Part shown: piece by piece, positions 1 through 26,463 of the stretch
How positions within the stretch are numbered: position 1 is the stretch's first letter
How the letters are laid out: every line of letters starts with the position of its first letter
DNA from: Octopus sinensis
Lineage: Eukaryota
NCBI RefSeq assembly: GCF_006345805.1
Contig: NW_021834779.1
Coordinates: 1 to 26,463 of the forward strand
DNA length: 26,463 nucleotides
Direction: 5' to 3'
Notes under the pieces: generated by a model
Databases searched by the model: none
Told to the model about the DNA's origin: nothing
Seen by the model: the letters and a program-made list of their open reading frames with translations, nothing else
Program-made: the position numbers and the translations under genes

Positions 1-62
1 TTATATCTCACACAAAATATCTTAAATAACAAAATTATACTAAATTAAATTTATTGTCATCT
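1..62. other. Conserved non-coding element (partial), copy 1 of 3, in the presumed leader intron of a Pcdh gene beyond the left edge
   Basis: Aligns by eye to 10580-10643 and 17880-17941 (core aaatatcttaaataacaaa...taaa...ttat...catct) and sits at the same relative position in each unit. Confidence 0.6.
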
Positions 63-68
63 AAATAG

Positions 69-111
<43 letters not shown>

Positions 112-120
112 TAATAATAA
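69..120. repeat. (TAA)n microsatellite
   Basis: About 17 TAA units read directly, with one interruption. Confidence 0.95.
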
Positions 121-730
121 CGATGCTCATAGACACGACAGAGTTGGGACCTACATACCCTGGAAGCTATGCCAACACTATGGAATAACAACAGAAAAAA
201 GATGGTATAGGCACACACCAGAAAAGGTCACAGAAAACGAGAAAGCAACTACACTCTGGGATATGCCAATACACACAGATAGAGAAATTAAGGCCAGTAG
301 ATCAGATATAGTTGTCAGAGATCATGAAGAAAAAAATGCTTTCTAACTGATGTATCAATACCAGCAGATGACAACGTTTCTCTAACAGAAATGGAAAAGT
401 TTCAAAATACAGAGACCAAGAAATAGAGGTAACTCGAATGTGGAATCTAAAAACAGAAACAATTCCTATCTTACTAGGTGCATTAGGCATGATAAAAGAA
501 TATTCAGACAAATGCATAACAAAAACACCAGGACTTAAAAATATATATAACATACAGAGAATAGCACTACTGGGCACTCCACACATCCTATGCAAAAAAA
601 CTTTCAATACAGTAACCATAAGAGCATCACAGCAAACCACAGCACATACCCAAGGCACACAAGATCTGCGCTCGGTAGTGAAGTGAAAGCATGCTATAAA
701 AATAAAACTACTGAATAATAATAATAATAA
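121..730 (+). mobile_element. 5'-truncated non-LTR retrotransposon with restriction-like endonuclease (R4/Dong-like), degenerate
   Basis: Translation across frameshifts gives RHDRVGTYIPWKLCQHYG...LWDMPIHTDREIKASRSDIVVRDHEEK...DVSIPADDNVS...IEVTRMWNLKTETIPILLGALG...IQRIALLGTPHIL, the typical C-terminus of REL-type LINEs. It is followed by a short 3' UTR and (TAA)n tail (714-730) and has (TAA)n on its 5' side. Confidence 0.85.
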
Positions 731-981
731 TTTATAGGATTGAGGTAACTCCTCCAGTAGGTATACAGAAGCAAAAATAAGAAGAGCGCTATTGTTATCA
801 AGTGAACAATATTTCGGCATCTAGTGTGACTTCCACAAGTTCAAAAAATAAACTTTGCTTCTGTATACCTACAAAAGGAGTTACCGCAATCCTATAAAAT
901 ATTACCAAAAATGAAGTAGATTGACAAGTTTATCTTTTGAACCTGTGGAAGGTACACTAGATGCTGAAATATCGTTCACTT
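731..981. repeat. Interleaved inverted repeats A-B-A'-B'
   Basis: 731-775 is the reverse complement of 854-898 (41/45 match). 800-855 is the reverse complement of 926-981 (50/56 match). Confidence 0.9.
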
Positions 982-1208
982 AATAATAATAATCCTTTCT
1001 ACTATAGGCACAAGGTGTAAAATTTGGAGAAGGGGAATAGTTAATTACGTCGACCCCCAGTGTTTCACTGGTACATATTTTAGCGATCGCCGAAGGGATG
1101 AAAGGCAAAGTTGACCTCGGTGGAATCTGAACTCAGAACATAAAGACAAATGAAATACTGCTAAGCATTTAGTCCGGTGTGATAATGATTCTGCCAGCTC
1201 ACCATCTT
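981..1208 (-). mobile_element. tRNA-derived SINE with (ATT)n tail
   Basis: The minus strand has A-box-like GAGCTGGCAGAATC and B-box-like GAGTTCAGATTCC. The body GGATGAAAGGCAAAGT.GAC is shared with copies at 7735, 10661 and 23581. Confidence 0.8.
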
Positions 1209-1283
1209 AATAATAATAATAACAAAACATTCTTGGTTTATTATATACTAAAAAAGACATAAACACTTAACAGAGTATATCTG

Positions 1284-1310
1284 TATCTATCTATCTATCT
1301 ATCTATCTAT
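1284..1310. repeat. (TATC)n microsatellite
   Basis: 6 perfect units plus a partial unit. Confidence 0.9.
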
Positions 1311-1589
1311 AGGGATATTAGTGATCTGTTAGAGTTCATTGAAGGTAGAGAAAGATTAAGACTTAATCAGTGAATTATTACAACAAAATAGATATAAAAT
1401 ATATTGACATACATTATTATCATCCAGTCTTTTTGGCTATCAATCTCATGATGTCTGTCAGTGAAATAAATATATATACACATAGTTTGAACAATATAAT
1501 ATAAATATTATATATAAAACATATTTTAGCAATATATATAGTTTAAAATATCTTGTATAATGTTTCATGTTTGATTCTGACACTAAAAG

Positions 1590-2224
1590 ATGTAATGCAG
1601 TTTGAAGTAATTGTATTACAATGACAACTGCAGTTGTGTTGTTAATGGTGGAAGTGATGGCTAGATCTCTCGATCCTCCAGTGTCCCAGTCCCTGTGTAT
1701 ATACAACATGGCAGACATTTTAGATATTATCCTTACCCTGTCTTTCATTAGAAACACAAATAATATAAATGTTATAATGAATATGAAAAGATAATAAAGA
1801 GAAAGAGAGAGAGGGAGACTTACCTGCATTGTTTAATCCTTCACTGTAGTTGTGTGTGATGGATGATGTGTATCCTGCTGTAGTGTTCCACTCCAACTGC
1901 TGCTGCTGTAGTGGTATTATAGTGGTACTGCTGCTGTTGTAGTAGTGTTCCTGTGTTACTGCTCCTGCTGCTGCTGTTCCTGTGTAACTGCTGATATAAT
2001 AGTGTGTGACAGTTGCTGTATGTAGTGGGAGGTGATGTTAGCCAGATGCTGGTGTGTGCTAGTTACAACTCTATGTCCTCCACACACACACACACCACAA
2101 TTGTGTGTATGATGAACAAAGAAAAAAGCTATCAGCCTCACTTTCAATATTGAAAGAAATAGAGAAAATCTCTCTCATCCAATAGGAAATTACTGCAATG
2201 ATGTCTGTGTCACACAAACACATC
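1590..2224 (-). promoter_or_regulatory. Conserved unit block, copy 1: candidate promoter plus leader exon (donor at 1824|1823) for the next Pcdh gene beyond the left edge
   Basis: Near-identical to three other copies. CCAAT 2179-2183, palindrome CTTTCAATATTGAAAG 2141-2156, TG and CAG repeats, ATGCAG|GTAAGT donor, second donor-like CAGG|GTAAGG at 1737|1736. The function is inferred. Confidence 0.55.
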
Positions 2225-3126
2225 GAACAAGAGAATTCATGTTAAACAGAAGCAACTTCATTTTTTCTATTTAATAAAAACACTAAGTTTACATATTTGA
2301 TGTTATAAGATTTATAATAATATTTCTTGATATTTAATGGGTTATTATTAACTTCACTATGAGAATACATTTTCAGGATTTCTATCAGAAAGAAATTGAT
2401 TTTAGATGAAGTCTTCAAAGATTTCATTATTTAAGGAGTTTACAAGACTAGATAAACTGTAAACTAAGTAAATTCGGAGAAACAAAAAGTATTTTTGAGT
2501 TAAAAATTTAAAAAACACGATTTTCTGACACTTACTTTACTTTATACATAATAAAATATGAAACTTTTAGAATTTCTAAGAAAACTTCAAAAATGAATTG
2601 ACAGCTTTAGTATGTTACCAATATAGGTAACAGTACATTATTGGATGTTATGGGAGCTAACAATTACCTATACTTATATTAACTAGTAATTACCTATATT
2701 TATATTCATTAGTAATTAGTAAAATTCAATATACACTAAATATAAAAGAAGAGGAGAAACCAAAAGTGGAATATTTTAAATGAAAGCAAACAATTTATGG
2801 TAGAATTGATATCAAACCAAAAGACACAACAACTAAACATTCTAGGATGACTCAAACAAATTTACCTATGTTTAGTGAAATGTCTATACTAAGACTGAGA
2901 GGAAAATTACTATTTTATAATAGTGGATTATAGTAAGTAGGGTAGGGACTTTGTGATAGGTAATGAATCAGAGATGTAAATTAGCAGTAATAATGGATGC
3001 CACAGGTAGGCTCTTTAAGTGTGACGTGTGAAAGAAACATAGAGTTGATATTTTTACATGAATATAAAGTATTGTATAAGATTTGGTATGTGAGAGAATC
3101 ATTTAACAATAGTCATGGAACATCTA

Positions 3127-3206
3127 CTATGTTGGCTGTAGATAGGTATCTTGTATTTGTTGTCCCTTTAGTATTGTGGCTGCAACTGGATTGTCATTGG
3201 TATATT
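3127..3206 (-). CDS. Pcdh: Protocadherin A, last coding exon (EYTNDNPVAATILKGQQIQDTYLQPT*)
   Basis: Acceptor TTTTGCAG|AA. Phase 1 matches the exon-2 donor and gives the longest frame, ending TAG TAG. Conserved in B and C. Confidence 0.7.
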
Positions 3207-3370
3207 CTGCAAAATATCAAATATACAAACACAAATTACATTTCAATATAACAACTCCAATATATAAAGATACAAACATTGATCTTATATTACACTAAGC
3301 ATAACATTATATATTGTCCTACAGTAATAAAGGCAATTACATTTATATGTTATGTTTTGATAAAAGTTAC

Positions 3371-3515
3371 CTGGTTCTGCAGGTATCTCATCATATGGTT
3401 TAGTCTTGCCATTACTCTTGCTAGCTTCTCTGTCCTTTTGGGATGTTAAGGTGTCACTGTTGTAAGACATGATGGAACTGGTGCGACGTCCTTGACTATG
3501 GATTGAATCACATCT
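3371..3515 (-). CDS. Pcdh: Protocadherin A, cytoplasmic exon (RCDSIHSQGRRTSS...PYDEIPAEP)
   Basis: Acceptor TTTTCTAATCAACAG|AGA (phase 0), donor CCAG|GTAACT (phase 1), 145 nt. The peptide is identical in A, B and C. Confidence 0.8.
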
Positions 3516-3879: not shown

Positions 3880-6274
3880 CTGAGGCACAGGTGGAAGTCT
3901 CCTTTGTGTTGTTGAGAATTTCCACTCATCTGGTGTCTGTTCCATCTCCAGAAAAAACTGACTTTTAGATTTTATTGTCTGAAGATTTCGGTTAAATATC
4001 TCTTCTGCATTTCTCGTTATTGCAACAGGATTGTTAGTCTGATACAGTAATTGTCTCATCTCAGTCTGAGAGAGAAAGTTGGGATTCTCTGCTGTTGTGG
4101 GTGAGTTATTTGTGTGATTAATACATCTGAAAACACACAGTGTTATGGACACTACAATAGCCACAGATAGTATTACAGCTGCTGCTACAATGATAATTAC
4201 CCAAGTCATATTCAGGTCGTGACCAGACTGGAATGGCACAGCAGTCAACATTGGAGATGTATCATTACTAACAAACAGTGTTAGTATGATAGCAGTTGTT
4301 GCTGATTGAACTGGAGTACCACCGTCTTTCACTATAAACTGCAGCTCATATGTTCCTGCATCATTTTGGTAAACTGTGCGAGAGAAAGATAACACACCAG
4401 TGTGTGAGTTCACTGTAAACAGGTTTTATCATTGGATCTCAGTATTCCATATGTGAGGAAAGCATTGTTTCCAGTGTCTTTGTCAGATGCTCTCAGAATT
4501 GTGATGTCCTTCTTACTGTGTGGATGGTAGTGGACATCGAGATTGTAAGGGTCATTATTAGGAAACGTAAAATACGGAGCATTATCATTTTTATCTAGAA
4601 TCTCAATAACAATATTGCAGTGTCACTGAGAGAAGGTGTTCCATTATCTTTCACTAAAACCTTGAACTTATAGATGTCTTTCATTTCTCGATCTATTGGT
4701 TGTGATGTAGAAATAAATCCATATTTTGTCAGTTGGAAAGGAATGTTATCATTGTTGTTATCATTGATGATAGAATATGTAAGTTGGCCTCCATCTTCAA
4801 GATCTGGGTCTGTAGCATTGATGAAGCCAATAGGGAAGTCAACTTTCTGGTTTTCATAGGTGAGGAATTGGAATGTTTCTTTGGTAAAATGTGGTTCTAC
4901 ATCATTGACATCAGTTACTTTGACAGAGAAATATTTTTTACTTTCTAGTTGAGGTGACCCCATGTCATGACACACAATAGATGCTTTATAGTGGTCCCTT
5001 ATCTCTCTGTCAAGGTGGCCCTTAACAATCATTTTATATTCTTTAGAATCTATTTTGGCAAGTTTAAATTTATCATGTTTTAAATCACAGATAACCTCAC
5101 CATTAGGTCCACTATCAGTGTCAGTGACCATAACATAAGCTATAAAACTATCTACTTCACTGTCTTCTGAAACTGCAGCTGAGCTCTCTGATAAAGGAGA
5201 TACAAAATCTATATTTATCAATGGAGCATTATTCTGGTTATTAACTATATGAATCTGAACTGCTGCAACAGATTTTTTTGGTGGTTTTCCTCCATCCCTT
5301 GCTTCAATAAATAACTTATAATACTGCATTTTACTAAAATGAAAGCTGTCATGTAAAAATAAATCTCCAGTTTTCTTATCTAATACAAAATATTTCTGGA
5401 TATTTCGAGATGTTTTATGGTTGAAATGATACGAAATCCTTCCATTGTCTCCAGAATCTTTATCTGTGGCCTTTAAAGTAAAAATTGGTAAATGTCTTTG
5501 ATGTGAATTACTTACAGATGTGTTGTACAGGTCGTGTGAAAATACAGGTGTGTTATCATTGACATCAGTTACAGATATGTGTACCTTGAGTGTAGCTGTT
5601 TTGGGAGGATTCCCTCCATCTTTAGCTTCCAAGGTTAACATGTATGAGTCTTTTACTTCCCTGTCTAACTTATCTTCAAGAATTATTTCAGGTGTGAAAA
5701 TACCTTTGTGTTTTGTGACAGAGAGTGAAAATGGTTCTCTTTTACTTTTCTTGATCATATATGTAATTTGGGAATTTTTTATTGAAATATCTTCATCAAT
5801 GGCATTTAAAAGTGGGATTTTAGTACCTTTAAAATCTCTCTCTAAAAACTTTATTGTGATTTCATTCTGTGGAAATTCTGGAGAATGGTCATTGATGTCA
5901 TCTATTAATATTTTAATTTTTAGAATCTTCATAAATGTTTTTCCTTTTCTCACTGCTACTTTAACTATTCTGGAACATTCTTTGTTGTATGTACACAGGG
6001 ACTCTGCATCCAGTGTCTGAGTTGTGTATAGTTTTCCTGAGTTGGTGACATTAAATAAGTGAGAACCACTCTCGACTGTCCTTTGTAGTTGTGTAAATGT
6101 AATGAGAGTGTGTTGTTGATGTGTGAGAGGGTGTGATAAGTTAGAGTCAACAGCAATGTCTCCTATATAGGTGTGAGGTCTGTCTTCTTCCTTGACATGG
6201 TATGTAATATCTATGGACAGTACAAGGGTGATCAGTAAATGTAGAAGACACAGTAGACCAATATATGCTGTCAT
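3880..6274 (-). CDS. Pcdh: Protocadherin A, large exon (signal peptide, EC1-EC6, TM, juxtamembrane), with two 1-nt deletions as assembled
   Basis: Cadherin motifs (DINDHSPEF, LDRE, DVNDNTPVF, AxDxD, DGGxP), EC1 C-X5-C, TM WVIIIVAAAVILSVAIVVSITLCVF, donor CCTCAG|GTAAAT. It is 2395 nt vs 2397 in C, with deletions at ~4617 (GG>G) and ~4424-4427 (T5>T4). Could be a pseudogene or an assembly error. Confidence 0.9.
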
Positions 6275-6432
6275 GTCTGGAATTCTTCATCACATTTCAG
6301 CAGGAGAAATTGCTACAAAACATGAGAAATACATTTAAAGTTTATTTATAATTCAACAAATCTAATTATATTTACAATAATCACTGTGACACATCTATTT
6401 CTATCTGGAAACGTGTTCCATTTGTCAAAATT

Positions 6433-8019
6433 GAACGTGGAGCAAAAAAAGGTACTTTTTACACAGTTTTTTTAAATATGTTTCCAAAAATATATTTTTC
6501 ATTGCAAAATCCTTTATAAACAACTGTGTTAAAATCTGAAGTTCTTAAATATACATCTTCAGGCTCCACAGCCCACGTGAAATTTTGAATAATGAGCAAA
6601 AAATCAATTTATAACACATTTGCATTCCTCATTTTATTTTTTATATTCATTGTTACAAATTGATTTTCTTTCGCGAAATTATTTAAAAACAAGAGTGTTA
6701 AAATCTCAAGGTCTACAATTTATATCTTCAGGGTCCACCACACACTTGAAATTTCGAAATTATGTGAAAGAAATAGACTTTGTGACTTTGTTTCCTTTAT
6801 TATTTTTAATACTAGGTCACTGAATATATGTGTTACATGAGGTCTAGATCACACACACATTAAAATAAAATTACATATAAACCAATTTTTGATTCTTGAC
6901 ACATTTTGGTGATAAAAATATTTCCAATAAAAAATGTCAAATAAATCTTTTGTTGCATTTTTCTTAAACACATTACACTGTTTGAAATGATGGAACATTT
7001 TTTCTATTTCTCCCAGATTTTAGTAATGCTTGATACTTTAGATAAAAGTTCAAGATTTTTAGTTTAACTGACTCAATTGTAACACAAGGGATGGATGCCT
7101 TTTGCCAAAGAAGTATTATCTTTTCTGCCTCAATCTCGAAAATTTGTTTAAATGAAGGATCTTTCTTAACTATATTCTTTTCTTTATCTTGTTCAAATAA
7201 AACACATTTTAGTATGTCCCACCTAGTTGGCAAAACTCACTTGCTAAGATCATATGGAGTACCAAATATTGGGCATTCAATATCATGGTGCGTTATTGGC
7301 TTACGAGTCATCACTAAATGTAAACAACACTAAATTTAACGTGATCGTTAATTTTAATACAATGGCCTAAAGTCAAGGTACAAAGCAGAAAACTTCACAC
7401 GTACCATGTACATCCACACACAATGACTGCTGCAGTGGCACTGGAGAGAAGTTCACACTCCCGTTCTCTATATAGTCAGTGCGAACCTCAAGATATTAAT
7501 CAATTGTATTGAAACTTGGTATGCAACCTCTTAAGGATACTATATTTACTGTTTTGCATTTTGCTATGTAGAAATATATATACATTACGACTTATAATCG
7601 ATGAAATCCAAAATTTGACCAAAAATAGCGATTTTTAAATTTTTCAATTGTGTTGCGGAGCCTGAAAAGCATATTTAATCGCAATGTTCTTTATACACTT
7701 TTCTTTTTAACCTAATTCACAACAAAATATCTATTTCTTTATTACGCATAAGGGGCTAAACACAGAGGGGACAGACAAGGACAGACATAGGTATTAAGTC
7801 GATTACATCAATCCCAGTGCATAACTGGTACTTAATTTATCGACCCCGAAAGGATGAAAGGCAAAGTCGACTTCGGCGGAATTTGAACTCACAACGTAAC
7901 GACAGACGAAATACGGCTACGCATTTCGCCCGGCATGCTAACGTTTCTGCCACCTCACTGCAACAAAATATCGATTCTTGGTTACCAATTTCGAAAGTTG
8001 CACTTTTCGCTCCACCCTA
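6433..8019 (-). mobile_element. Decayed DNA transposon (possibly hAT-related) with imperfect TIRs
   Basis: Left end GAACGTGGAGCAAAAAAAGGTACTTTT resembles the right-end reverse complement TAGGGTGGAGCGAAAAGTGCAACTTTC. Internal ORF remnant 6973-7233 (PTRWDIL...W.KASIP...KI) resembles transposase N-termini as I recall them. A ~70-100 bp direct repeat has period 169 (6526, 6695). Family assignment is uncertain. Confidence 0.5.
7735..7961 (-). mobile_element. tRNA-derived SINE nested in the DNA transposon
   Basis: Same head and body as 981-1208 (B-box GAGTTCAAATTCC) but a different 3' tail. Confidence 0.8.
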
Positions 8020-10844: not shown

Positions 10845-11164
10845 GAAAATAATATCAGTAATAACAATAAACATCCTTAGTTTATTATTTACAATATATA
10901 TATGTATATCTATAAAATGGATATTAATAATCTATCACAGTACATTGAAAATTTAATTAGTGAGTTATTACAACAAAACAGATATAAACTATACTGACAT
11001 ACATTAGTCAACACCCAGTCTTACTGGTTAGTGATGTCTTCTGACAGTGAAATAAAATATATATATATACAACTAGTTTAGACTATATTAGACCAATATT
11101 CTTTATAGCAATATATATGTTTTTTAATATTTCTTGTATAATGTTGTCTTGTGTGATTCTGACA

Positions 11165-11820
11165 TTAAAAGGTGTAATCCAGATTGAAGTAATTGCATTA
11201 CAATGTCTACTGCAGTTGTGTTGTTAATGGTGGAAGTGATGGCTAGATCTCTCGATCCTCCACTGTCCCAGTCCCTGTATATATACAACATGGCAGACAT
11301 TTTAGATATTATCCTTACCCTGTCTTTCATTAGAAACACAAATAATATAAATGTTATAATGAATATGAAAAGATAATAAGAGAGAGAGAGAGAGAGAGAG
11401 AGACTTACCTGCATTGTTTAATCCTTCACTGTAGTTGTGTGTGATGGATGATGTGTATCCTGCTGTAGTGTTCCACTCCAACTACTGCTGCTGCTGCTGT
11501 AGTGGTATTATAGTGGTACTGCTGCTGTTGTAGTAGTGTTCCTGTGTTACTGCTGCTGCTGCTGCTGTTCCTGTGTAACTGCTGATATAATAGTGTGACA
11601 GTTGCTGTATGTAGTGGGAGGTGAGATGTTAGCCAGATGCTGGTGTGTGCTAGTTACAACTCTATGTCCTCCACACACACACACACACACACAATTGTGT
11701 GTATGATGAACAAAGAAAAAAGCTATCAGCCTCACTTTCAATATTGAAAGAAATATAGAAAATCTCTCTCATCCAATAGGAAATTATTGCAATGTTGTCT
11801 GTGTCACACAAACACATCAA
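11165..11820 (-). promoter_or_regulatory. Conserved unit block, copy 2: candidate promoter plus leader exon of Pcdh A (donor 11409|11408)
   Basis: CCAAT 11773-11777, palindrome 11735-11750, (CA)n, CAG repeats, ATGCAG|GTAAGT. The matching acceptor is TTTTGTAG|CAATTT at 6313|6312. Confidence 0.55.
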
Positions 11821-12462
11821 ATAACAGAAGCCACATGGAAGTAAAGCAGTTTGTAGTGCTAAGAATTTCGTTTGTGTTTAATATTAATAAGCAAAGAAAC
11901 TTCATATTTTCCTTTTATCTTCAAGTTATAAACTATTTGATATTCTAGTCTAGAAATTAATCTTTATAATTATTTAAATTCAAAATTATATTTGACGCTA
12001 ATATTGATTTTAAACTGCTATATAATGGTGGAAAATAATTAATTCTAACTTTTTATCTTTGAATATTTATGAATTTGTCTGATGCTTAACTTACAAATTC
12101 TATAATACAATAAATATACGATTTCCTTAGTTGGTTTTGAAATATAATCATATATTTCAGGTAAATATTATGAAATGAGTTATGAACTACTTCATGTAAA
12201 ATTAGGGTTTTTAGATGAATATGAGAAAAATAAAATCTATAACAGTTGAAACAAACTAAAGAAGTATGGAAATATAGTTTAAAATATTAACATTATTTAA
12301 GTATCAGACATGGAAATTATACACCATAAGGAAGATACTGTTGGCCGTTTATGTGTGCGATGTGTGAAAAAAACATAGAGTTGATATTTTTATAGGAATA
12401 TAAAGTATTGTATAAGATTTGGTGTGAGAGAGAATCATTTAACAATAGTCATGGAACATCTA

Positions 12463-12542
12463 CTATGTTGGCTGTAGATAGGTATCTTGTATTTGTTGTC
12501 CCTTTAGTATTGTGGATGCAACTGGATTGTCATTGGTATATT
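12463..12542 (-). CDS. Pcdh: Protocadherin B, last coding exon
   Basis: Acceptor TTTTACAG|AA, 80 coding nt to TAG, one amino-acid change vs A (VAST vs VAAT). Confidence 0.7.
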
Positions 12543-12706: not shown

Positions 12707-12851
12707 CTGGTTCTGCAGGTATCTCATCATATGGTTTAGTCTTGCCATTACTCTTGCTAGCTTCTCTGTCCTTTTGGGATGTTAAGGTGTCACTGTTGTA
12801 AGACATGATGGAACTGGTACGACGTCCTTGACTATGGATTGAATCACATCT
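12707..12851 (-). CDS. Pcdh: Protocadherin B, cytoplasmic exon (145 nt)
   Basis: Acceptor CTAATCCACAG|AGA, donor CCAG|GTAACT, same peptide as A and C. Confidence 0.8.
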
Positions 12852-13109
12852 CTGTGGATTAGAAAACAAAGCAGGGTGAAACAATATAAAATAAAAGTAG
12901 CAATTGCATCTATATTCTGGAATGTTCCTAGAATGAAAGAACAGATTAAAGCTTTGAATTCAACAAAAATATAATTGAAGATTTTCTTAGTAAATTATAA
13001 TAAACATTGAGGAGAGAATTAACAAATATATTAGTGCAAAGAAATATTTATAATTGCTTCTCCAAAAAGTAAATTTATGAAATGCCTCACCCGGGGCACT
13101 GATATTATA

Positions 13110-13481: not shown

Positions 13482-13613
13482 ATCAATAATCTTTTATAAA
13501 GAAGATATAAGGAATATGATATGACATGTAAATGAAATAAAATATATAAAACATGTTTTCAGAAATATTGATCACAAATATCTAACAAGAAAATTATTTT
13601 AAAATATATTTAC

Positions 13614-16012
13614 CTGAGGCACAGGTGGAAGTCTCCTCTGTGTTGTTGAGAATTTCCACTCATCTGGTGTCTGTTCCATCTCCAGAAAAAACTGACTTTT
13701 AGATTTTATTGTCTGAAGATTTCGGTTAAATATCTCTTCTGCATTTCTCGTTATTGCAACAGGATTGTTAGTCTGATACAGTAATTGTCTCATCTCAGTC
13801 TGAGAGAGAAAGTTGGGATTCTCTGCTGTTGTGGGTGAGTTATTTGTGTGATTAATACATCTGAAAACACACAGTGTTATGGACACTACAATAGCCACAG
13901 ATAGTATTACAGCTGCTGCTACAATGATAATTACCCAAGTCATATTCAGGTCGTGACCAGACTGGAATGGCACAGCAGTCAACATTGGAGATGTATCATT
14001 ACTAACAACAGTGTTAGTATGATAGCAGTTGTTGCTGATTGAACTGGAGTACCACCGTCTTTCACTATAAACTGCAGCTCATATGTTCCTGCATCATTTT
14101 GGTAAACTGTGCGAGAGAAAGATAACACACCAGTGTGTGAGTTCACTGTAAACAGGTTTTTATCATTGGATCTCAGTATTCCATATGTGAGGAAAGCATT
14201 GTTTCCAGTGTCTTTGTCAGATGCTCTCAGAATTGTGATGTCCTTCTTACTGTGTGGATGGTAGTGGACATCGAGATTGTAAGGGTCATTATTAGGAAAC
14301 GTAAAATACGGAGCATTATCATTTTTATCTAGAATCTCAATAACAATATTGGCAGTGTCATTGAGAGAAGGTGTTCCATTATCTTTCACTAAAACCTTGA
14401 ACTTATAGATGTCTTTCATTTCTCGATCTATTGGTTGTGATGTAGAAATGAATCCATATTTTGTCAGTTGGAAAGGAATGTTATCATTGTTGTTATCATT
14501 GATGATAGAATATGTAAGTTGGCCTCCATCTCCAAGATCAGGGTCAGTAGCATTGATGAAGCCAATAGGGAAGTCAACTTTCTGGTTTTCATAGGTGAGG
14601 AATTGGAATGCCTCTTTGGTAAAATGTGGTTCTACATCATTGACATCAGTTACTTTGACAGAGAAATATTTTTTACTTTCTAGTTGAGGTGACCCCATGT
14701 CATGACACACAATAGATACTTTATAGTGGTCCCTTATTTCTCTGTCAAGATGACCCTTAACAATCATTTTATATTCTTTAGAATCTATTTTGGCAAGTTT
14801 AAACTTATCATGTTTTAAATCACAGATAACCTCACCATTAGGTCCATTATCGGTGTCAGTGACCATAACATAAGCTATAAAACTACCAATTTTACTTGCT
14901 TCTGAAACTGCTGCTGAGCTCTCTGATAAAGGAGATACAAAATCTATATTTATCAATGGAGCATTATTCTGGTTATTAATAATGTGAATCTGGACTTTGG
15001 TTACAGAACTTAAATGTGGATTTCCTTCATCCTGTGCTTCAATAAATAATTTATATGATTGCTTTTTACTAAATTGAAAGCTGTCATGTAAAAACAGATC
15101 TCCAGTCTTCTTATTTAATACAAAATATTTCTGGATATTTCGAGAGGTTTTGTGGTTGAAATGGTAAGAAATCTTTCCATTGTCTCCAGAATCTTTATCT
15201 GTGGCCTTTAAAGTAAAAATTGGCAAATGTCTTTGATGTGAATTACTTATAGAGATGTTGTAAAGTTTCTGTGAAAATACAGGTACATTATCATTGACAT
15301 CTGTCACAGATATGTGTACCTTGAGTATAGCTGTTTTGGGAGGGTTTCCTCCATCTTTAGCTTCCAGAGTCAACATATATGAATCTTTGAGTTCCCTGTC
15401 TAATTTGTCTCCTAAAACTAGAGCTGGTATGAAAACACCATCATATCGCTTTTCAACTGAGAGAGAAAATGGTTCTCTTTTACTTTTCTTAATCATATAT
15501 GTTATTTGTGAATTCTGTATTGAAATATCTTGATCAATGGCATTTAAAAGTGAGATTTTAGTACCTTGAAGGTGACTCTCAAGAAATTCAATTTGAACTT
15601 CATTCTTTGGGAATTCTGGTGAGTGGTCATTGATGTCTTCTATTAATATTTTTATCCTTAGAATCTTCATAAAAGTTTCTTCTTTCCTCACTGCTACTTT
15701 GACAATTTTGGAACATTCCTTGTTGTATGTACACAGAGACTCAGCATCCAGTGTTTGAGTAGTGTATAGTTTTCCTGAGTTGGTGACATTAAATAAGTGA
15801 GAACCACTCTCGACTGTCCTTTGTAGTTGTGTAAATGTAATGAGAGTGTGTTGTTGATGTGTGAGAGGGTGTGATAAGTTGGAGTCAACAGCAATGTCTC
15901 CTATATAGGTGTGAGGTCTGCCTTCTTCCTTGACATAGTATGTAATATCTATGGACAGTACAAGGGTGATCAGTAAATGTAGAAGACACAGTAGACCAAT
16001 ATATGCTGTCAT
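13614..16012 (-). CDS. Pcdh: Protocadherin B, large exon, with one 1-nt deletion as assembled just after EC6
   Basis: Same architecture as A and C, 2399 nt vs 2400 expected (B has one extra codon in EC2). AAA>AA at 14007-14008 shifts the frame before the TM. Donor CCTCAG|GTAAAT. Confidence 0.9.
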
Positions 16013-16394
16013 GTCTGGAATTCTTCATCACATTTGAGCAAGAGAAATTGCTATAAAGACAACAAAGATATTTAAATGAAATTAAATTTAAAAAACAATA
16101 ATTTTTCTAAATGTTATTGCTATTTCTTAATAAAGTCCGGTAGACACAACTGAATAATTTAAAATTAGCTTCTGTGATACAGGTTGGAAGCATTAGAAAG
16201 TATAATATTGGTTTATGGAAATCAATTGGTTCATGCTGAAAACATTGGTTCATGCTGATCAAAATACGAACTAAACAAAAGGTTAATAATATTCCTTTTA
16301 TGCCAGGAATACATCTCTTTATAGAGAAGCACCATGTTGATAGTGACAAAGAACAAGATCAAATGTGTAATGCAACTATACTTAAGAGAAGTAC

Positions 16395-18216: not shown

Positions 18217-18217
18217 T
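18098..18217. repeat. (GAT)n and (TA)n(CA)n microsatellites
   Basis: Read directly from the sequence. Confidence 0.85.
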
Positions 18218-18434
18218 ACGGATAAGGTGATCTGTTAGAGTTAATTGAAGCTACAGCAAATTAAGATTTAATTAGCGAACTATTACAACAACAAAGATAC
18301 AAGCAACATCGATAGACATTATTAACACCTAGTTTCATTGGGTACAAATCAATGTTTTGTGACTTTAAATGATTATATACTTTACACAAATGTATATAAT
18401 ATATATTGTAGCGATACATATGTGATTCTGAGAT

Positions 18435-18931
18435 TAAAAGATGTAATCCAGTTCAAAGTAATTGTATTACTGCAGTTATTGTTGTTAATGGTGGCAGTGA
18501 TGGCTAGATCTCTCGATCCTCCACTGTCCCAGTCCCTGTATATATACAACATGGCAGACATTTTAGATATTATCCTTACCCTGTCTTTCATTAGAAACAC
18601 AAATAATATAAATGTTATAATGAATATGAAAAGATAATAAAGAGAAGAAAGGGAGAGAGAGAGACTTACCTGCATTGTTTAATCCTTCACTGTAGTTGTG
18701 TGTGATGGATGATGTGTATCCTGCTGTAGTGTTCCACTCCAACTGCTGCTACTGCTGCTGTAGTGGTATTATAGTGGTACTGCTGCTGTTGTAGTAGTGT
18801 TCCTGTGTTACTGCTGCTGCTGCTGCTGTTCCTGTGTAACTGCTGATATAATAGTGTGACAGTTGCTGTATGTAGTGGGAGGTGAGATGTTAGCCAGATG
18901 CTGGTGTGTGCTAGTTACAACTCTATGTCCT

Positions 18932-18964
<33 letters not shown>

Positions 18965-19088
18965 TGTGTGTATGATGAACAAAGAAAAAAGCTATCAGCC
19001 TCACTTTCAATATTGAAAGAAATATAGAAAATCTCTCTCATCCAATAGGAAATTACTGCAATGTGGTCTGTGTCACACAAACACATCA
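18435..19088 (-). promoter_or_regulatory. Conserved unit block, copy 3: candidate promoter plus leader exon of Pcdh B (donor 18670|18669)
   Basis: CCAAT 19042-19046, palindrome 19004-19019, longest (CA)n, ATGCAG|GTAAGT. The acceptor is CTTTATAG|CAATTT at 16051|16050. Confidence 0.55.
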
Positions 19089-19731
19089 AATAAAAGAATT
19101 CATATTACACTGAAGCAGCTTGATAATTTACAGGGGTATAATTAGTAATATGACTTTATTATATATTTAGTCTTAGTAAAAAGGAATTTCTATTAAAAAA
19201 TTTATAATTTTATAATTATATTTCTTAGTATCATGCAAGTTGTGAGATGACAATTCAGTAATTTCTATGAAAAAAATTTGACTAAACTTTCAAGGGAAAA
19301 TAGAGAATGTTTTATCAATGTGAGGGATAAATTACTTCTTGAGTTGATACAATGAGAAAAAGCTAAGAGAAAAGTTGTAAATAAAGGTAAAACAAATGAA
19401 AGTACATTTTAGAATTGGTGTCAAATGAAAACAACATAATTAAACTTCCGAGGATGACTCAGACTAATTTATCTATGCTTAGTGAAATGTCTATACTAAA
19501 ACTGACGGGAAAATAACTATAATAATTAACTATGGTAATGTAGAGTTGGGTGTTTGTAACAATTAATTTACCACAGATGGAAATTAGGGGTCATAAGAGA
19601 TGCCGCTGTAAGGCCCCTTACGTGTGTGATGGATGAAAGAAACATAGAGTTGATATTTTTATATGAATATAAAGTATTGTATAAGATTTGGTGTGAGAGG
19701 GAATCATTTAACAATAGTCATGGAACATCTA

Positions 19732-19811
19732 CTATGTTGGCTGTAGATAGGTATCTTGTATTTGTTGTCCCTTTAGTATTGTGGCTGCCACTGGATTGTC
19801 ATTGGTATATT
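19732..19811 (-). CDS. Pcdh: Protocadherin C, last coding exon
   Basis: Acceptor TTTTGCAG|AA, 80 coding nt to TAG. Confidence 0.7.
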
Positions 19812-19975: not shown

Positions 19976-20120
19976 CTGGTTCTGCAGGTATCTCATCATA
20001 TGGTTTAGTCTTGCCATTACTCTTGCTAGCTTCTCTGTCCTTTTGGGATGTTAAGGTGTCACTGTTGTAAGACATAATGGAACTGGTGCGACGTTCTTGA
20101 CTATGGATTGAGTCACATCT
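19976..20120 (-). CDS. Pcdh: Protocadherin C, cytoplasmic exon (145 nt)
   Basis: Acceptor CTAATCAACAG|AGA, donor CCAG|GTAACT. Confidence 0.8.
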
Positions 20121-20849: not shown

Positions 20850-23246
20850 CTGAGGCACAGGTGGAAGTCTCCTTTGTGTTGTTGAGAATTTCCACTCATC
20901 TGGTGTCTGTTCCATCTCCAGAAAAAACTGACTTTTAGATTTTATTGTCTGAAGATTTCGGTTAAATATCTCTTCTGCATTTCTCGTTATTGCAACAGGA
21001 TTGTTAGTCTGATACAGTAATTGTCTCATCTCAGTCTGAGAGAGAAAGTTGGGATTCTCTGCTGTTGTGGGTGAGTTATTCGTGTGATTAATACATCTGA
21101 AAACACACAGTGTTATGGACACTACAATAGCCACAGATAGTATTACAGCTGCTGCTACAATGATAATTACCCAAGTCATATTCAGGTCGTGACCAGACTG
21201 GAATGGCACAGCAGTCAACATTGGAGATGTATCATTACTAACAAACAGTGTTAGTATGATAGCAGTTGTTGCTGATTGAACTGGAGTACCACCGTCTTTC
21301 ACTATAAACTGCAGCTCATATGTTCCTGCATCATTTTGGTAAACTGTGCGAGAGAAAGATAACACACCAGTGTGTGAGTTCACTGTAAACAGGTTTTTAT
21401 CATTGGATCTCAGTATTCCATATGTGAGGAAAGCATTGTTTCCAGTGTCTTTGTCAGATGCTCTCAGAATTGTGATGTCCTTCTTACTGTGTGGATGGTA
21501 GTGGACATCGAGATTGTAAGGGTCATTATTAGGAAACGTAAAATACGGAGCATTATCATTTTTATCTAGAATCTCAATAACAATATTGGCAGTGTCATTG
21601 AGAGAAGGTGTTCCATTATCTTTCACTAAAACGTTGAACTTATAGATATCTTTCATTTCTCGATCTATTGATTGTGATGTAGAAATGAATCCATATTTGG
21701 TCAGTTGGAAAGGAATGTTATCATTGTTGTTATCATTGATGATAGAATATGTAAGTTGGCCTCCATCTCCAAGATCAGGGTCTGTAGCATTGATGAAGCC
21801 AATAGGGAAGTCAACTTTCTGGTTTTCGTAGGTGAGGAATTGGAATGTCTCTTTGGTAAAATGTGGTTCTACATCATTGACATCAGTTACTTTGACAGAG
21901 AAATATTTTTTACTTTCTAGTTGAGGTGACCCCATGTCATGACACACAATAGATACTTTATAGTGGTCCCTTATTTCTCTGTCAAGATGGCCCTTAACAA
22001 TCATTTTATATTCTTTAGAATCTATTTTGGCAAGTTTAAATTTATCATGTTTTAAATCACAGATAACCTCACCATTAGGTCCACTATCAGTGTCAGTGAC
22101 CATAACATAAGCTATAAAACTACCAATTTTACTTGCTTCAGAAACTGCTGCTGAACTCTCTGTTAAAGGAGATACAAAATCTATATTTATCAATGGAGCA
22201 GTATTCTGGTTATTAATAATGTGAATCTGGACTTTGGTTAAAGAACTTAAGGGTGGATTTCCTCCATCTCGTGCTTCAATAAATAATTTATAAGACTGCA
22301 TTTTAGTAAACTGAAAATTGTCATGTAAAAACAAATCTCCAGTGTTCTTATCTAAAACAAAATATTTCTGGATATTTCGAGATGTTTTATGGTTGAAATG
22401 ATAAGAAATCTTTCCATTGTCTCCAGAATCTTGATCTGAAGCTTTTAAAGTAAGAATTGGTAAATGTCTTTGATGTGAATTACTTATAGAGATGTTGTAG
22501 ATTTCCTGTGGAAATACAGGTGTATTATCATTAACATCTGTTACAGATATGTGTACTTTGAGTGAAGCTGTTTTTGGTGGGTTCCCTCCATCTTTAGCTT
22601 CTAGTATCAACATATAATAGTCATTGAGTTCCCTGTCTAATCTATCTTCTAGAATTAGCGCAGGTATGAAAATACCCTTCTGTTTTGTGACAGAGAGAGA
22701 AAATGGTTCGCTTTTACTTTTTTTAATTATATATGTAATTTGAGAATTTTTGATTGAAATATCTTTATCAATTGCATTCAGAAGAGGGATTTTGCTTCCT
22801 TTACTCTCTCTTTCTGAAAAATGAATCTTAACTTCATTTTGTGGAAATTCTGGAGAATGGTCATTGATGTCTTCTATTAATATTTTTATTTTGAGAATTT
22901 TCATAAATGCTTCTTCTTTCCTCACTGCTACTTTAACTATTCTGGAACATTCCCTGTTGTATGTACACAGAGACTCAGCATCCAGTGTTTGAGTAGTGTA
23001 TAGTTTTCCTGAGTTGGTGACATTAAATAAGTGAGAACCACTCTCGACTGTCCTTTGTAGTTGTGTAAATGTAATGAGAGTGTGTTGTTGATGTGTGAGA
23101 GGGTGTGATAAGTTAGAGTCAACAGCAATGTCTCCTATATAGGTGTGAAGTCTGTCTTCTTCATTGACATGGTATATAATATCTATGGACAGTACAAGGG
23201 TGATCAGTAAATGTAGAAGACACAGTAGACCAATATATGCTGTCAT
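20850..23246 (-). CDS. Pcdh: Protocadherin C, intact large exon (799 codons; predicted spliced protein 873 aa)
   Basis: Uninterrupted ORF with signal peptide, six cadherin repeats, TM helix and donor CCTCAG|GTAAAT (phase 0). Confidence 0.95.
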
Positions 23247-23580
23247 GTCTGGGATTCTTCATCACATTTCAGCAGGAGAAATTGCTATAAAAGACAACAA
23301 ATATTTAAACATTAAGTACAATAAAATAAGTTCATTTGAAGTTATAATAACCATTATATAAATGATTATTGATTGTATGTCTTTTACATGTGCTCTAAAT
23401 AATTCAAAATGTTTCTTTTAATCTAACAAGCTAAGTGACAATATATAGATGATGCCGCTTCTTTGGAAAAAGGCAACAACCTTTCTGTGTTTAGAATTGC
23501 ATTTAGAATGTTTTGGCATGACAAGTTTCATAATTTACTATTGAGAGAGTACTTAGAAAGGGACAACGTCTTGATATTGA

Positions 23581-23792
23581 TTTCTAATTATGGCACAAGG
23601 CTAGCAGTTTTGGGGGAGGGGTTAAGTTGCTTACATCGATCCCAGTGCTCACCTGGTACTTATTTTATTAACCCCAAAAGGATGAAAGGCAAAGTCAAAC
23701 CTGGTGGAATTTGAACTCAGAATGTAAAGGCAGACGAAATACTGCTGAGCAGTTTGCTTGGTAAGATAATAATTCTAGCAGCATATTGCCTC
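23581..23792 (-). mobile_element. tRNA-derived SINE (same family as 981-1208)
   Basis: AAGGATGAAAGGCAAAGTCAA...GGAATTTGAACTCAGAATGTAAAG on the plus strand. Confidence 0.75.
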
Positions 23793-23929
23793 ACAGTAGA
23801 TTGATACTGAAATATCACATCTTTGTTGACTCCATGAGTATCTGATGAGGATATTTCATTGAGATATTTTGTAACAAATGTTTAATCTTGTTCAGGCTCC
23901 ATGTCTTCCTTAGAAACGATTTCAAAACA

Positions 23930-24030
23930 GACACGGAGCCTGAACAGCCTTTCAGCTGGTCAGTTCCTACCAGACCATCCAACCCATACTAGCATGAAAA
24001 ATGGACATCAAATGATGATGACAATGGTGA
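23930..24030 (+). mobile_element. Degenerate RTE-like 3' end
   Basis: CATCCAACCCATACTAGCATGAAAAATGGACATCAAATGATGATGA matches the 9391-9475 terminus. Confidence 0.55.
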
Positions 24031-24954
24031 TTAGATGTAATCAATTTACAGTTAGATATTTAGAATTTAATCCACACTGTAGTTATATGTTGGAATATTA
24101 ACTGATAATGCTGTTAATGATTCTATTTTTGGTTGAAAGAATAAATGTAATGCAAAACATATCTTTATATTGTAGAAGTGTATGTAATACCTCTCTGTAG
24201 AAATATGAAGCCAAGTTCCATTCCTCAATACACACACCAATATAAACACCTTCAGGCACACATATATATTACAAGCAAGCAAAACAGTCAATATTCTTCT
24301 GGATAGGTAACAACACTGGGTGGACAAAGTAAACATATTGGAGGTAGACAAAAGGATAGATAAAGAAACTGAGGCAGTCAGAGAAGATACCAGAACAATT
24401 ACAATTAGACTTGTCATAGACAACATGACTGCAGCCATTATCTCTTCACTTAAACTGCAAACAAGAGGAACAGATGAACAACAGGATTGTTTCAAAAAAC
24501 TCTCTTATGGATCATCATGATAACAAAATAAAAATAAGAAAACAGTGGAAATTTTACCGGTGAGTGTGTTACATTATAAGGCACAAAAAGAAAATGATTC
24601 TCCCCAAAATGAGTTTATATTTCACACAAAATATTTTGAATAAAAAAGCTAGACAAGATTATATTTATCATCCATTGTAATGATAATGGTGACGAGGAAC
24701 ATTCTTTGCTTATTATGCACAAATGAATATATAATGTATATATATATATATATATATAGGGATATTACTAATGTTAGAATTCATAAATTATTAACACTGT
24801 CTTATTGGCTATAATCAATGTTTTTTGATAGTTAAATAAATGCACACACACACATACACGCACACACATATATCAGTTTGGACTATATTAAACAATTCTA
24901 TATAAGATATATAGTTTAATATCCTTTGTATAATGTTGTCTTATGTGATTTTGA

Positions 24955-25592
24955 TATTAAAAGGTGTAATCCAGATTGAAGTAATTGTATTACAATGACT
25001 ACTGCAGCTGTTGTTAATGGTGGAAGTGATGGCTAGATCTCTCGATCCTCCACTGTCCCAGTCCCTGTATATATACAACATGGCAGACATTTTAGATATT
25101 ATCCTTACCCTGTCTTTCACTAGAAACACAAATAATATAAATGTTATAATGAATATGAAAAGATAATAAAGAGAAAGAGAGAGAGAGAGAGACTTACCTG
25201 CATTGTTTAATCCTTCACTGTAGTTGTGTGTGATGGATGATGTGTATCCTGCTGTAGTGTTCCACTCCAACTGCTGCTGCTGCTGTAGTGGTATTATAGT
25301 GGTACTGCTGCTGTTGTAGTAGTGTTCCTGTGTTACTGCTGCTGCTGTTCCTGTGTAACTGCTGATATAATAGTGTGACAGTTGCTGTATGTAGTGGGAG
25401 GTGAGATGTTAGCCAGATGCTGGTGTGTGCTAGTTACAACCCTATGTCCTCCACACACACACACACAATTGTGTGTATGATGAACAAAGAAAAAAGCTAT
25501 CAGCCTCACTTTCAATATTGAAAGAAATATAGAAAATCTCTCTCATCCAATAGGAAATTACTGCAATGTTGTCTGTGTCACACAAACACATC
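24955..25592 (-). promoter_or_regulatory. Conserved unit block, copy 4: candidate promoter plus leader exon of Pcdh C (donor 25198|25197)
   Basis: CCAAT 25547-25551, palindrome 25509-25524, ATGCAG|GTAAGT. The acceptor is CTTTTATAG|CAATTT at 23285|23284. Confidence 0.55.
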
Positions 25593-26396
25593 AAACAAGA
25601 GAAGTCATATTAATGACCCAAAGCAGCATCACTTTTTCTTTTTAATAAAAACTCTACATTACATATTTAATGTTAGGAAATAAGACTTATATATATTTAT
25701 AATAATATTTCTGGATATTTGATGGATTATTATTAACTTGACTATAAGAATACATATTCGAGATTTCTATTAGAAACAAATTGATTTCATGGTAAGTCAT
25801 CAAACATAATTATTTAAGAAGTTTACATGATTAGTCAAACTAGAAACAAAGTAAATTAGGAGAAGCAAAACTATTTCCATTTTAAAAAGACACATGATTT
25901 TCCAATATGTTTTATGTCTTATTTCATAAAATATATAACATTTAAATCTTAACACTTCAAAAAACTTTATAAATATGTCGGTAAGTTTAGTATATTAACA
26001 ATATAGGTAACAACACTTTATTGAATGTTGTGGGAATCAACACTTATCCATTAATGCTGGTATTGATCAATGAAATTTAAAATACATTGAACATAAAGTG
26101 GTGTGAACAAAAGACGAAATGCAAATAAAATAAAACAATGGTAAAAGTGAGTATGATAATGTTAAATGGTAGAATTCATATCAAACTAAAATTCTATAAC
26201 TAAACTTCTGAGAATGATTCAGATTAAGTTGTGTATGTTTAGTGAAATGTATATACTAAGACTGAGAGGAAAACAACTATTTTGTAATAATGAACGTTGG
26301 TAATGCAGAATAAGTTGTTTGTGGTATTTAACGTATCAGTGCTGCAAATTAGGGGTCATAATAGATGCCACTGTAAGGCCCTTATGTGTGATGTGT

Positions 26397-26463
26397 GAAA
26401 GAAACATAGAGTTGATATTTTTATAGGAATATAAAGTATTGTATAAGATTTGGTGTGTGAGAG
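26397..26463 (-). other. 3' UTR segment of the last exon of a fourth protocadherin (D) that lies beyond the right edge
   Basis: GAAAGAAACATAGAGTTGATATTTTTATAGGAATATAAAGTATTGTATAAGATTTGGTGTGTGAGAG matches the post-stop segments at ~3030-3095, ~12367-12430 and ~19635-19700. Confidence 0.8.

Follow-up and report, generated by a model that had tools for sequence, protein, structure and literature searches.

The stretch of DNA analysed here (the window, 26,463 nucleotides, which is the entire unplaced Octopus sinensis contig VCDQ01010532.1) is very probably a segment of a clustered-protocadherin array, made up of complete genes that arose by whole-gene tandem duplication and were subject to gene conversion sparing EC2 and EC3, the second and third extracellular cadherin (EC) domains. 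This type of locus is already known and its kind is ordinary, and nothing in the window points to exons being shared through splicing of the vertebrate type. The locus confirms published biology, in that octopus protocadherin diversity comes from whole-gene arrays and not from shared-exon splicing. Our analysis adds a domain-resolved conversion map, a conserved leader with a promoter-like block, a splice-spanning upstream open reading frame (uORF) and a double stop before the main ATG.

Three units with flanking parts follow one another head to tail in a single orientation, all on the minus strand of the window; the sense coordinate is 26464 minus the window coordinate (Table 1). Four leader blocks, three large exons, three pairs of exons 2 and 3 and part of a fourth 3' UTR had been listed in a preliminary description of this DNA, and all were located. 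Its donor-to-donor periods of 9585, 7261 and 6528 bp are exact when counted between the AATGCAG|GTAAGT donors of the leaders, and every unit has the same splice phases, the large exon ending in phase 0 and exon 2 in phase 1. The repeated blocks of at least 300 nt are 93-100% identical, far beyond chance. In unit A the large exon holds 38 nt of 5' UTR, the signal peptide, EC1-EC6, the transmembrane segment and the proximal cytoplasmic region, ectodomain and transmembrane segment thus lying within a single ORF from ATG to donor. The main ATG and the signal peptide sit in the large exon, the leader being non-coding for the main ORF, and exons 2 and 3 with the stop codon come within 0.3-0.8 kb after every large exon. 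An ATG, a stop codon and a 3' UTR are present in each of the units, which makes each a complete four-exon gene, and what had been described as private copies of constant exons is therefore simply the gene structure of this family.

Table 1. Features of the protocadherin array segment, in window coordinates
Feature	Unit	Position	Strand	Remarks
3' UTR fragment	-1	26166..26463	-	80-95% identical to 3' UTRs of units A-C
Leader block	A	24948..25634	-	donor 25198
Large exon	A	20850..23284	-	ATG 23246; 799 codons, open; donor CAG|GTAAAT
EC2-EC3 variable cassette	A	22188..22847	-	escapes homogenisation (dS)
Exon 2	A	19976..20120	-	RCDSIHSQERR...YDEIPAEP, cytoplasmic tail; starts in phase 0, ends in phase 1
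Exon 3, coding part	A	19732..19811	-	EYTNDNPVAATILKGQQIQDTYLQPT, TAG, then 3' UTR
Candidate AATAAA	A	about 19155-19160	-	sequence motif
Leader block	B	18420..19106	-	donor 18670
Large exon	B	13614..16050	-	ATG 16012; one 1-nt deletion as assembled
Exon 2	B	12707..12851	-	SQGRR variant
Exon 3, coding part	B	12463..12542	-	VAST variant; ends in stop codon
Leader block	C	11159..11845	-	donor 11409
Large exon	C	3880..6312	-	ATG 6274; two 1-nt deletions as assembled
Exon 2	C	3371..3515	-	tail exon copy
Exon 3, coding part	C	3127..3206	-	ends in stop codon
Leader block	next unit downstream	1574..2260	-	donor 1824; large exon beyond contig end

Protocadherin genes were already annotated on this contig, to which the RefSeq proteins XP_036355791.1 and XP_036355790.1 map. 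The large exon of unit A matches XP_036355791.1 (P0006), the spliced model of this unit has the same C-terminus as a full-length RefSeq paralog (P0001), and the tail encoded by its exon 2 is found in both. The RefSeq name of the window genes, 'protocadherin beta-15-like', reflects a best BLAST hit rather than orthology. In the unit A protein, Pfam Cadherin was matched in five stretches (E = 1.6e-74) together with an N-terminal Cadherin_2, and no Pfam match to the cadherin cytoplasmic domain was obtained; Ca-binding linker motifs of the DxNDN type occur at residues 126, 238, 346, 456 and 562. Judged by inspection rather than with a predictor, the hydrophobic N-terminus MTAYIGLLCLLHLLITLVLS is a putative signal peptide and WVIIIVAAAVILSVAIVVSITLCVF the single putative transmembrane segment. 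The tail exons of distant family members are homologous and diverged, with a common Y[DE]EIP motif. Neural enrichment of the family's expression has been reported (PMC6339937, PMC9712504).

The array continues outside the window. A longer O. sinensis contig contains a duplicate of it, with 0 mismatches over 22.5 kb, and harbours at least five units, including a complete unit -1 preceding unit A (L006). The same module order is repeated on O. sinensis chromosome CM016872.1 (loci L001 and L005), where the nearest paralogs of the window genes are found (88-93% identical), and Argonauta hians also has an array with matching module order. Since the window is unplaced and wholly contained in another contig, one might suspect an assembly artefact, the array arising from one gene by false expansion or collapse. 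The units, however, differ from one another in their EC2-EC3 cassettes, and the introns and intergenic DNA of each are unique, and an independently assembled O. vulgaris chromosome carries a colinear array (95-97%) with one-to-one orthologs of units A, B and C, which makes such an artefact scarcely credible. Of the three large exons, that of unit A alone is open in the assembly. In unit B a deletion of one nucleotide (TTT to TT at about window 14009) results in a premature stop, and NCBI has divided this unit into two gene calls; unit C has two such deletions (CC to C at about window 4618 and AAAAA to AAAA at about 4428). If these frameshifts were real, units B and C would be pseudogenes. That they are true pseudogenes, and that the array is partly decaying here, is possible but unlikely. 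The frameshifts do occur in both redundant O. sinensis contigs, the frames of the O. vulgaris orthologs of B and C are disrupted as well, and probable pseudogenes in these clusters have been mentioned (Albertin 2022, PMC9068888). Nevertheless, all six disruptions across the two species are private 1-nt homopolymer shortenings and none is shared between orthologs, the O. vulgaris orthologs having full-length runs at the unit B site and at both unit C sites. There are no nonsense substitutions in the B and C units of either species, and dN/dS in these units is that of intact copies. Moreover, the two O. sinensis contig copies of the locus differ solely by three 1-nt homopolymer indels, one of them in a coding exon, and 4 singleton deletions stand against 6 singleton substitutions in the last 760 nt of seven copies. 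The duplicate contig shows an extra homopolymer difference in the large exon of unit C, at window 5630. The frameshifts of units B and C resemble the homopolymer errors of long-read sequencing.

Divergence at synonymous sites varies strongly along the large exon. Among six O. sinensis copies, mean dS is 0.13 in EC1, 0.59 in EC2, 0.31 in EC3, 0.09 in EC4, 0.06 in EC5, 0.000 in EC6 and 0.012 in the transmembrane and cytoplasmic part (EC2 versus EC6 plus transmembrane, Fisher's exact test, p = 6e-18). Within Octopus and within Argonauta, EC2 dS is 0.55-0.59 and EC6 dS 0.000 and 0.036, respectively. As paralogs are thus strongly diverged in EC2 and EC3 and nearly identical in EC6, as against an Octopus-Argonauta dS of 0.19-0.34 in the homogenised parts, EC2 and EC3 escape conversion. 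EC6 and the tail cluster by species in both lineages, and over residues 551-795 protein identity is 99.6% among the O. sinensis copies and 98.5% among those of A. hians, against 86% when the two species are compared. Outside the large exon, the leader blocks are 97.7% and the proximal intron 94% identical (four copies), and exon 2, intron 3 and exon 3 together are about 98% identical between units, whereas the introns neighbouring these blocks are unalignable (51-60%). The proposal that leaders and tail exons are kept homogenised was thus borne out, here with evidence from synonymous sites, and homogenisation of the array by gene conversion is strongly supported by these patterns of divergence. 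The notion of a variable ectodomain exon stood for EC2-EC3 only, most of the large exon being homogenised too, and that of an invariant tail did not stand, as the tail is subfamily- and species-specific across the family.

A very recent duplication without gene conversion, with EC2-EC3 evolving fast through positive selection or local hypermutation, would account for the near-identity of the 3' halves and would suit the published dating of the octopod protocadherin expansion to 8-14 Ma (PMC9795677). We consider it highly improbable, because the contrast falls at synonymous sites and dN/dS is about 0.2 in EC2-EC3 as elsewhere along the exon, so that there is no overall signal of diversifying selection. 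In addition, the dS of EC2 between paralogs exceeds that of the homogenised parts between Octopus and Argonauta, EC6 and tail group by species in both, and EC2 and EC3 contain mosaic tracts. Unalignable introns and intergenic DNA between homogenised blocks would also be unexpected for young duplicates. In our preferred explanation, duplication of whole genes has given head-to-tail, complete and independently terminated genes, each with a non-coding leader behind a conserved promoter-like block, an exon of about 2.44 kb and two short exons for the distal tail, the stop and the 3' UTR. Recurrent conversion between neighbours (concerted evolution) homogenises three portions of each gene: the promoter with the leader, the stretch from the 5' UTR to EC1, and that from EC4 to the tail and proximal 3' UTR. 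EC2 and EC3 are largely exempt, remaining old and diverged and being reshuffled only by occasional short conversion tracts. The outcome is a large set of proteins that share one chassis and differ in their EC2-EC3 cassettes.

The leader block consists of a conserved segment that is promoter-like and carries an inverted CCAAT box (ATTGG), of a non-coding exon and of ~250 nt of conserved proximal intron 1. The leader exon ends in ATGCAG|GTAAGT, and its core motifs and donor are kept in Argonauta. The leader does vary in its (TG)n and (CAG)n runs, as noted before, and exon 3 does occur in the VAAT and VAST versions. A RefSeq model joins a leader-type donor to the following large exon. The CGCT core of the vertebrate conserved promoter sequence element (CSE) was not found in the leaders, whose CpG count is zero, nor did a CTCF-like motif match there (6 matches window-wide versus 2.5 expected). 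In the 38-nt 5' UTR of the large exons all three frames are closed (two of three in unit B), the main frame by a TGATGA double stop that precedes the main ATG in every copy from either species, so that in-frame fusions are impossible. We also found a conserved 15-codon uORF that spans the splice and whose TGA overlaps the main ATG. AATAAA or ATTAAA occurs once per inter-unit interval, which is no above-chance frequency in such AT-rich DNA, and the candidate poly(A) signal lies only 40-100 nt ahead of the next leader block. Whereas anatomy, gene identity, synteny and the signature of conversion are demonstrated directly, promoter function, transcription start and polyadenylation sites are inferred, and each gene is most likely transcribed independently, from its own promoter.

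A vertebrate-like barcode had been proposed for this locus, in which any leader could splice to any downstream large exon and any large exon to any downstream tail. Splice phases would permit this (phase 0 follows all large exons), the units are closely spaced, with that lone candidate poly(A) signal between them, and in the multi-unit chains modelled by RefSeq the annotators' evidence linked neighbouring units. We nonetheless regard it as very unlikely. Sharing is not needed, as tail exons, stop codon and 3' UTR are present in each unit, and the framing as a new convergent cross-unit splicing system is not supported, each unit being already a complete gene. The matching phases carry little as an argument, since the leader is 5' UTR, where phase is irrelevant, and an exchange of tails between units would alter at most 1-2 residues; the TGATGA double stop further shuts the main frame. 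The annotated chains are sequential read-through, joining exon 3 of one unit to the leader of the next, and not exon skipping, and a search with the read-through peptide found no independent sequence. Furthermore, Albertin et al. 2022 (PMC9068888) explicitly rule out for cephalopods the splicing of diverse first exons to final exons that are shared. As a hint, the RefSeq read-through models are the sole sign of inter-unit transcripts, and because of them transcription may not be strictly gene by gene. It is tempting to speculate that neighbouring units are transcriptionally coupled, the expression of adjacent protocadherins being interdependent via read-through or promoter occlusion, although we hold this to be doubtful. 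The putative poly(A) region of one unit and the promoter-like block of the next are under 100 nt apart, and in read-through transcripts a weak donor splitting the stop codon of exon 3 (TA|GTAGAT) would be joined to an acceptor in the next leader, within the 16-mer ATATCAGCAG|TTACAC, from where the transcript would continue into the next large exon. This 16-mer is invariant in 11 of the 11 leaders examined in two species. The uORF and the double stop would insulate the ORFs from each other. Such coupling, if true, would amount to a mechanism of choice different from that of vertebrates.

Albertin and colleagues reportedly attributed cephalopod protocadherin arrays to full gene duplication as early as 2015. 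Later work also describes full gene duplications (Albertin et al. 2022, PMC9068888; Styfhals et al. 2019, PMC6339937), for which homogenisation by gene conversion was already suggested (PMC9068888). The window genes, themselves RefSeq-annotated members, likewise have most of the ectodomain in one large exon and do not differ in kind from those arrays. In vertebrates, each variable exon of the alpha and gamma clusters has its own promoter and is spliced to constant exons that are shared. The octopus array resembles these clusters in its tandem series of ~2.4-kb exons, which likewise code for six EC domains, a transmembrane segment and a short part of the cytoplasmic region, and in the conserved element upstream of each large exon. 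In contrast, its units have no shared constant region but their own tail exons, stop codon and 3' UTR, and neither the CGCT core of the CSE nor a CTCF-like motif was found in its leaders. Like the genes of the vertebrate beta cluster, the octopus units are tandem independent genes with their own cytoplasmic tails and no shared constant exons. Vertebrate beta genes consist of a single exon, while the octopus genes have a separate leader exon at the 5' end and two tail exons at the 3' end. Chelicerate sDscam and insect Dscam1 also draw great diversity of recognition molecules from tandemly repeated cassettes (PMC6339937), but they use alternative promoters or mutually exclusive splicing into the shared constant exons of a single gene, whereas the octopus units are whole genes.

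EC2 and EC3 set homophilic specificity in vertebrate protocadherins. In vertebrate clusters, gene conversion leaves dS at its maximum in EC2/EC3 and at its minimum in EC5/EC6 (PMC4978886), a pattern that the octopus array shares, with a contrast far stronger than the 2-5-fold reported in mouse and Xenopus; this likeness lies in the behaviour of the locus and is no evidence of membership, the cephalopod expansion being independent of that of vertebrates (PMC9068888). With EC2 and EC3 spared by conversion, evolutionary dynamics converge with those of vertebrates despite a different gene architecture. As conversion resets the 3' halves, duplication ages derived from whole-gene trees, such as that of the 8-14 Ma expansion (PMC9795677), may be too low for subfamilies of this kind. 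In current octopus assemblies, protocadherin counts and pseudogene calls are distorted by homopolymer errors and by chained gene models, and paralog-specific expression assays must target EC2-EC3 or the distal 3' UTR.

Our comparison of the array copies indicates that different parts of the large exon have very different histories. Copy differences are concentrated at nt 301-1050 of this exon, with nearly none beyond nt 1650. Mean dS, computed per region among six O. sinensis copies, follows the same course (table), a pattern that protein identities repeat, and the synonymous differences of EC2 and of EC6 plus the transmembrane (TM) segment are clearly distinct (p = 6e-18, Fisher's exact test); dN/dS is about 0.2 wherever measurable. 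With three Argonauta genes added, Octopus-Argonauta dS amounts to 0.19-0.34 in the homogenised parts, as against within-species values of 0.55-0.59 for EC2 and of 0.000 and 0.036 for EC6. The EC2 lineages therefore predate the Octopus/Argonauta split, and EC6 and the tail were reset within each species, a case of concerted evolution by gene conversion. The homogenisation of leaders and tail exons proposed in the preliminary description holds: identity reaches 97.7% in the leader and about 98% across exon 2, intron 3 and exon 3, as compared with 51-60% in neighbouring intron segments. Short mosaic tracts within EC2 and EC3 show that occasional patchwork exchange takes place there as well. In vertebrate clustered protocadherins, dS is highest in EC2/EC3 and lowest in EC5/EC6, the same direction of effect as in the octopus array (PMC4978886).

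We also observed EC2/EC3 tracts of 150-375 nt in which the O. vulgaris orthologs match an O. sinensis paralog other than their own counterpart; the unit A ortholog, for instance, matches unit C at nt 376-525. Such tracts point to short-tract conversion that reshuffles the variable cassette.

The window's genes are already annotated. It represents the entire unplaced contig VCDQ01010532.1 of the O. sinensis assembly GCA_006345805.1, as identified by protein search, and the RefSeq proteins XP_036355791.1 ('protocadherin beta-3-like') and XP_036355790.1 map to it. Pfam identifies five Cadherin domains and an N-terminal Cadherin_2 domain. The nearest paralogs, on chromosome CM016872.1, are 88-93% identical, and protein search found Argonauta hians relatives at 80-83%. 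The EC2-EC3 cassettes of the window are only 79-88% identical to the annotated chromosomal genes, which rules out that it is their haplotig. It is contained, as a duplicate, within a longer unplaced contig, VCDQ01002641.1, which lengthens the array to at least five units. Over 22,469 bp the two contigs show no mismatches and three 1-nt homopolymer indels; this assembly redundancy is a direct gauge of the indel error rate at the locus.

As assembled, unit B carries one 1-nt deletion, at about window 14009, and unit C two, at about 4618 and 4428. At all three frameshift sites the run is full-length in the O. vulgaris ortholog, and each of these orthologs shows a 1-nt homopolymer deletion private to it. 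One of the three indels between the redundant O. sinensis contigs falls in a coding exon, and the last 760 nt of seven copies contain four singleton deletions versus six singleton substitutions. No nonsense substitutions were found in the O. sinensis units or their O. vulgaris orthologs. On these grounds, the frameshifts are very probably assembly errors of the long-read consensus.

Repeat finding and self-BLAST recovered the blocks listed in the preliminary description, namely four leaders, three large exons and three exon 2/exon 3 blocks. Its donor-to-donor periods (6528, 7261 and 9585 bp) were reproduced exactly, and the VAAT/VAST variants and leader microsatellite differences are present as it described. 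With the genes on the minus strand, sense coordinates equal 26464 minus the window coordinate. On the O. sinensis chromosome (loci L001 and L005) and in Argonauta (locus L002), a large exon is likewise followed by exons 2-3, a leader and then another large exon. An O. vulgaris region is colinear with units A-C (95-97% nucleotide identity), which confirms the tandem order without reliance on the O. sinensis assembly. Unit tails are subfamily- and species-specific, and distant octopus protocadherins have their own diverged tails with the Y[DE]EIP motif in common. Thus, each unit does have private constant exons, but rather than a special device they represent the ancestral gene structure of the family, as the module order across species and the diverged tails indicate.

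The large-exon acceptor lies 38 nt upstream of the main ATG, and the exon, which encodes a signal peptide, EC1-EC6, a TM segment and a proximal cytoplasmic region, ends in phase 0 at CAG/GTAAAT. Exon 2 (145 nt) and exon 3 (80 coding nt, ending TAG) yield the tail RCDSIHSQ...YDEIPAEPEYTNDNPVAATILKGQQIQDTYLQPT, and the full-length RefSeq paralog P0001 ends in an identical tail. The leader contributes no coding sequence to the main ORF. Its sole ATG, in the terminal ATGCAG, opens a 15-codon uORF that runs across the splice and terminates at a TGA overlapping the main ATG (ACATGA); a uORF of equal length was read by hand from the printed Argonauta hians sequences. In both species, a TGATGA double stop in the main frame lies shortly before every main ATG. 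The leader block, which harbours an inverted CCAAT box and stretches conserved between Octopus and Argonauta, presumably provides promoter function and the transcription start. Neither a CTCF-like motif nor the CGCT core of the vertebrate CSE was found in the leaders. A core of about 45 nt inside proximal intron 1 (ATTATCTTTTCATATTCATTAT.ACATTTATATT) is almost invariant between Octopus and Argonauta, more conserved than the coding sequence. That the leader is instead the 3' end of the upstream gene is ruled out, since on L001 the 10 kb downstream of P0001 contain no leader; a RefSeq model pairing the leader donor with the acceptor of the next large exon also counters it.

Coordinates of array features, and mean dS by region
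Feature	Position	Strand	Remark
Leader donors AATGCAG/GTAAGT	end at window 25198, 18670, 11409, 1824	minus	
uORF	window 25198-25203 + 23247-23284 (unit A); equivalent positions in units B, C	minus	
Proximal intron 1	window 24948-25197, 18420-18669, 11159-11408, 1574-1823		~250 nt, 94% identical among units
Partial fourth 3' UTR	window 26166-26463	minus	repeat finding + self-BLAST
EC2 segment spliced out in XP_036355791.1	window 22506-22832		
Unit B intron 2 insertion	window ~12880-13512		
Interspersed repeat	window 1090-1202, 7846-7958, 23674-23786		
Local duplication	window 8620-9071		period 270 nt
Indels between redundant contigs	window 18226, 7021, 5630		
Duplicate of window on longer contig	L006 16159-38626		
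Chained RefSeq models	L005 6001-21309 and 21325 onward; L006 6556-28626		
Tract comparison regions (O. vulgaris)	L007 1148-2300 vs window units A and C; L007 9658-10800		
EC1			mean dS 0.13 (six O. sinensis copies)
EC2			mean dS 0.59 (six O. sinensis copies)
EC3			mean dS 0.31 (six O. sinensis copies)
EC4			mean dS 0.09 (six O. sinensis copies)
EC5			mean dS 0.06 (six O. sinensis copies)
EC6			mean dS 0.000 (six O. sinensis copies)
TM + cytoplasmic			mean dS 0.012 (six O. sinensis copies)

Splice phases are identical across all units in the alignment, and on this basis a vertebrate-like exon choice by splicing across units had been proposed. However, every unit is self-sufficient, a tail swap would alter at most one or two residues, and the large-exon 5' UTR blocks in-frame fusion. 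Moreover, according to Albertin et al. 2022 (PMC9068888), cephalopods do not use shared final exons, and we consider such exon choice highly improbable. The RefSeq model XP_029645448.2 connects exon 3 of one unit to an acceptor inside the next leader, through a weak exon 3 donor that splits the TAG stop codon, and continues from the leader donor to the 5' UTR of the next large exon. Eleven leaders from two species all share the same 16-mer at the read-through acceptor. When the peptide spanning the exon 3-to-leader read-through was searched against protein databases for transcript-derived ORFs, no independent support emerged: the sole match was a 60-aa O. bimaculoides tail fragment, without the extension. 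This type of junction hints at sequential read-through, unlike vertebrate-like exon choice. The frame of this model through the leader was rejected as a conserved coding frame: as read from the alignment, a TAG closes it in the B and C leaders, and at least one other copy keeps it open.

RefSeq also contains multi-unit models, 938, 1794, 3146 and 3333 aa long, in which neighbouring protocadherin units are chained together. Such models may reflect read-through transcripts, and gene counts based on them are inflated or distorted.

Published work (PMC9068888, PMC6339937) already covers this kind of locus, its origin by full gene duplication and its homogenisation through gene conversion. No domain-resolved conversion map for octopus protocadherins was found in the literature searched; this map, along with the details of the leader, the uORF and the double stop, adds modestly to a known kind of locus.

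Scans of the window for Rfam families (gathering thresholds), tRNAs and tandem repeats returned just microsatellites and a 31-nt CAG-rich leader repeat, and the ORFs of the longest intron are all short (80-86 aa). Intron 2 of unit B contains an insertion of about 580 nt with GC-rich and (CA)n/(TA)n content and without tRNA or Rfam match. Units A and C and the O. vulgaris ortholog lack it, so that a lineage-specific repeat insertion is probable. An interspersed repeat of about 110-180 nt (75-82% identity) recurs in the long first introns, and a local duplication is also present (table). In unit A, XP_036355791.1 splices out an in-frame, GT..AG-bounded segment of 327 nt that is exactly EC2, where the ORF is open; the bounding splice sites occur in units A and B, but unit C lacks them. 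Either the removal is an artefact of annotation or the segment is an exon-internal intron. Lastly, the Argonauta hians protein P0007 (L002, 953 aa) carries two copies of the exon 2 sequence, separated by translated intron, which reflects either tandem duplication of exon 2 or an artefact of the gene model.
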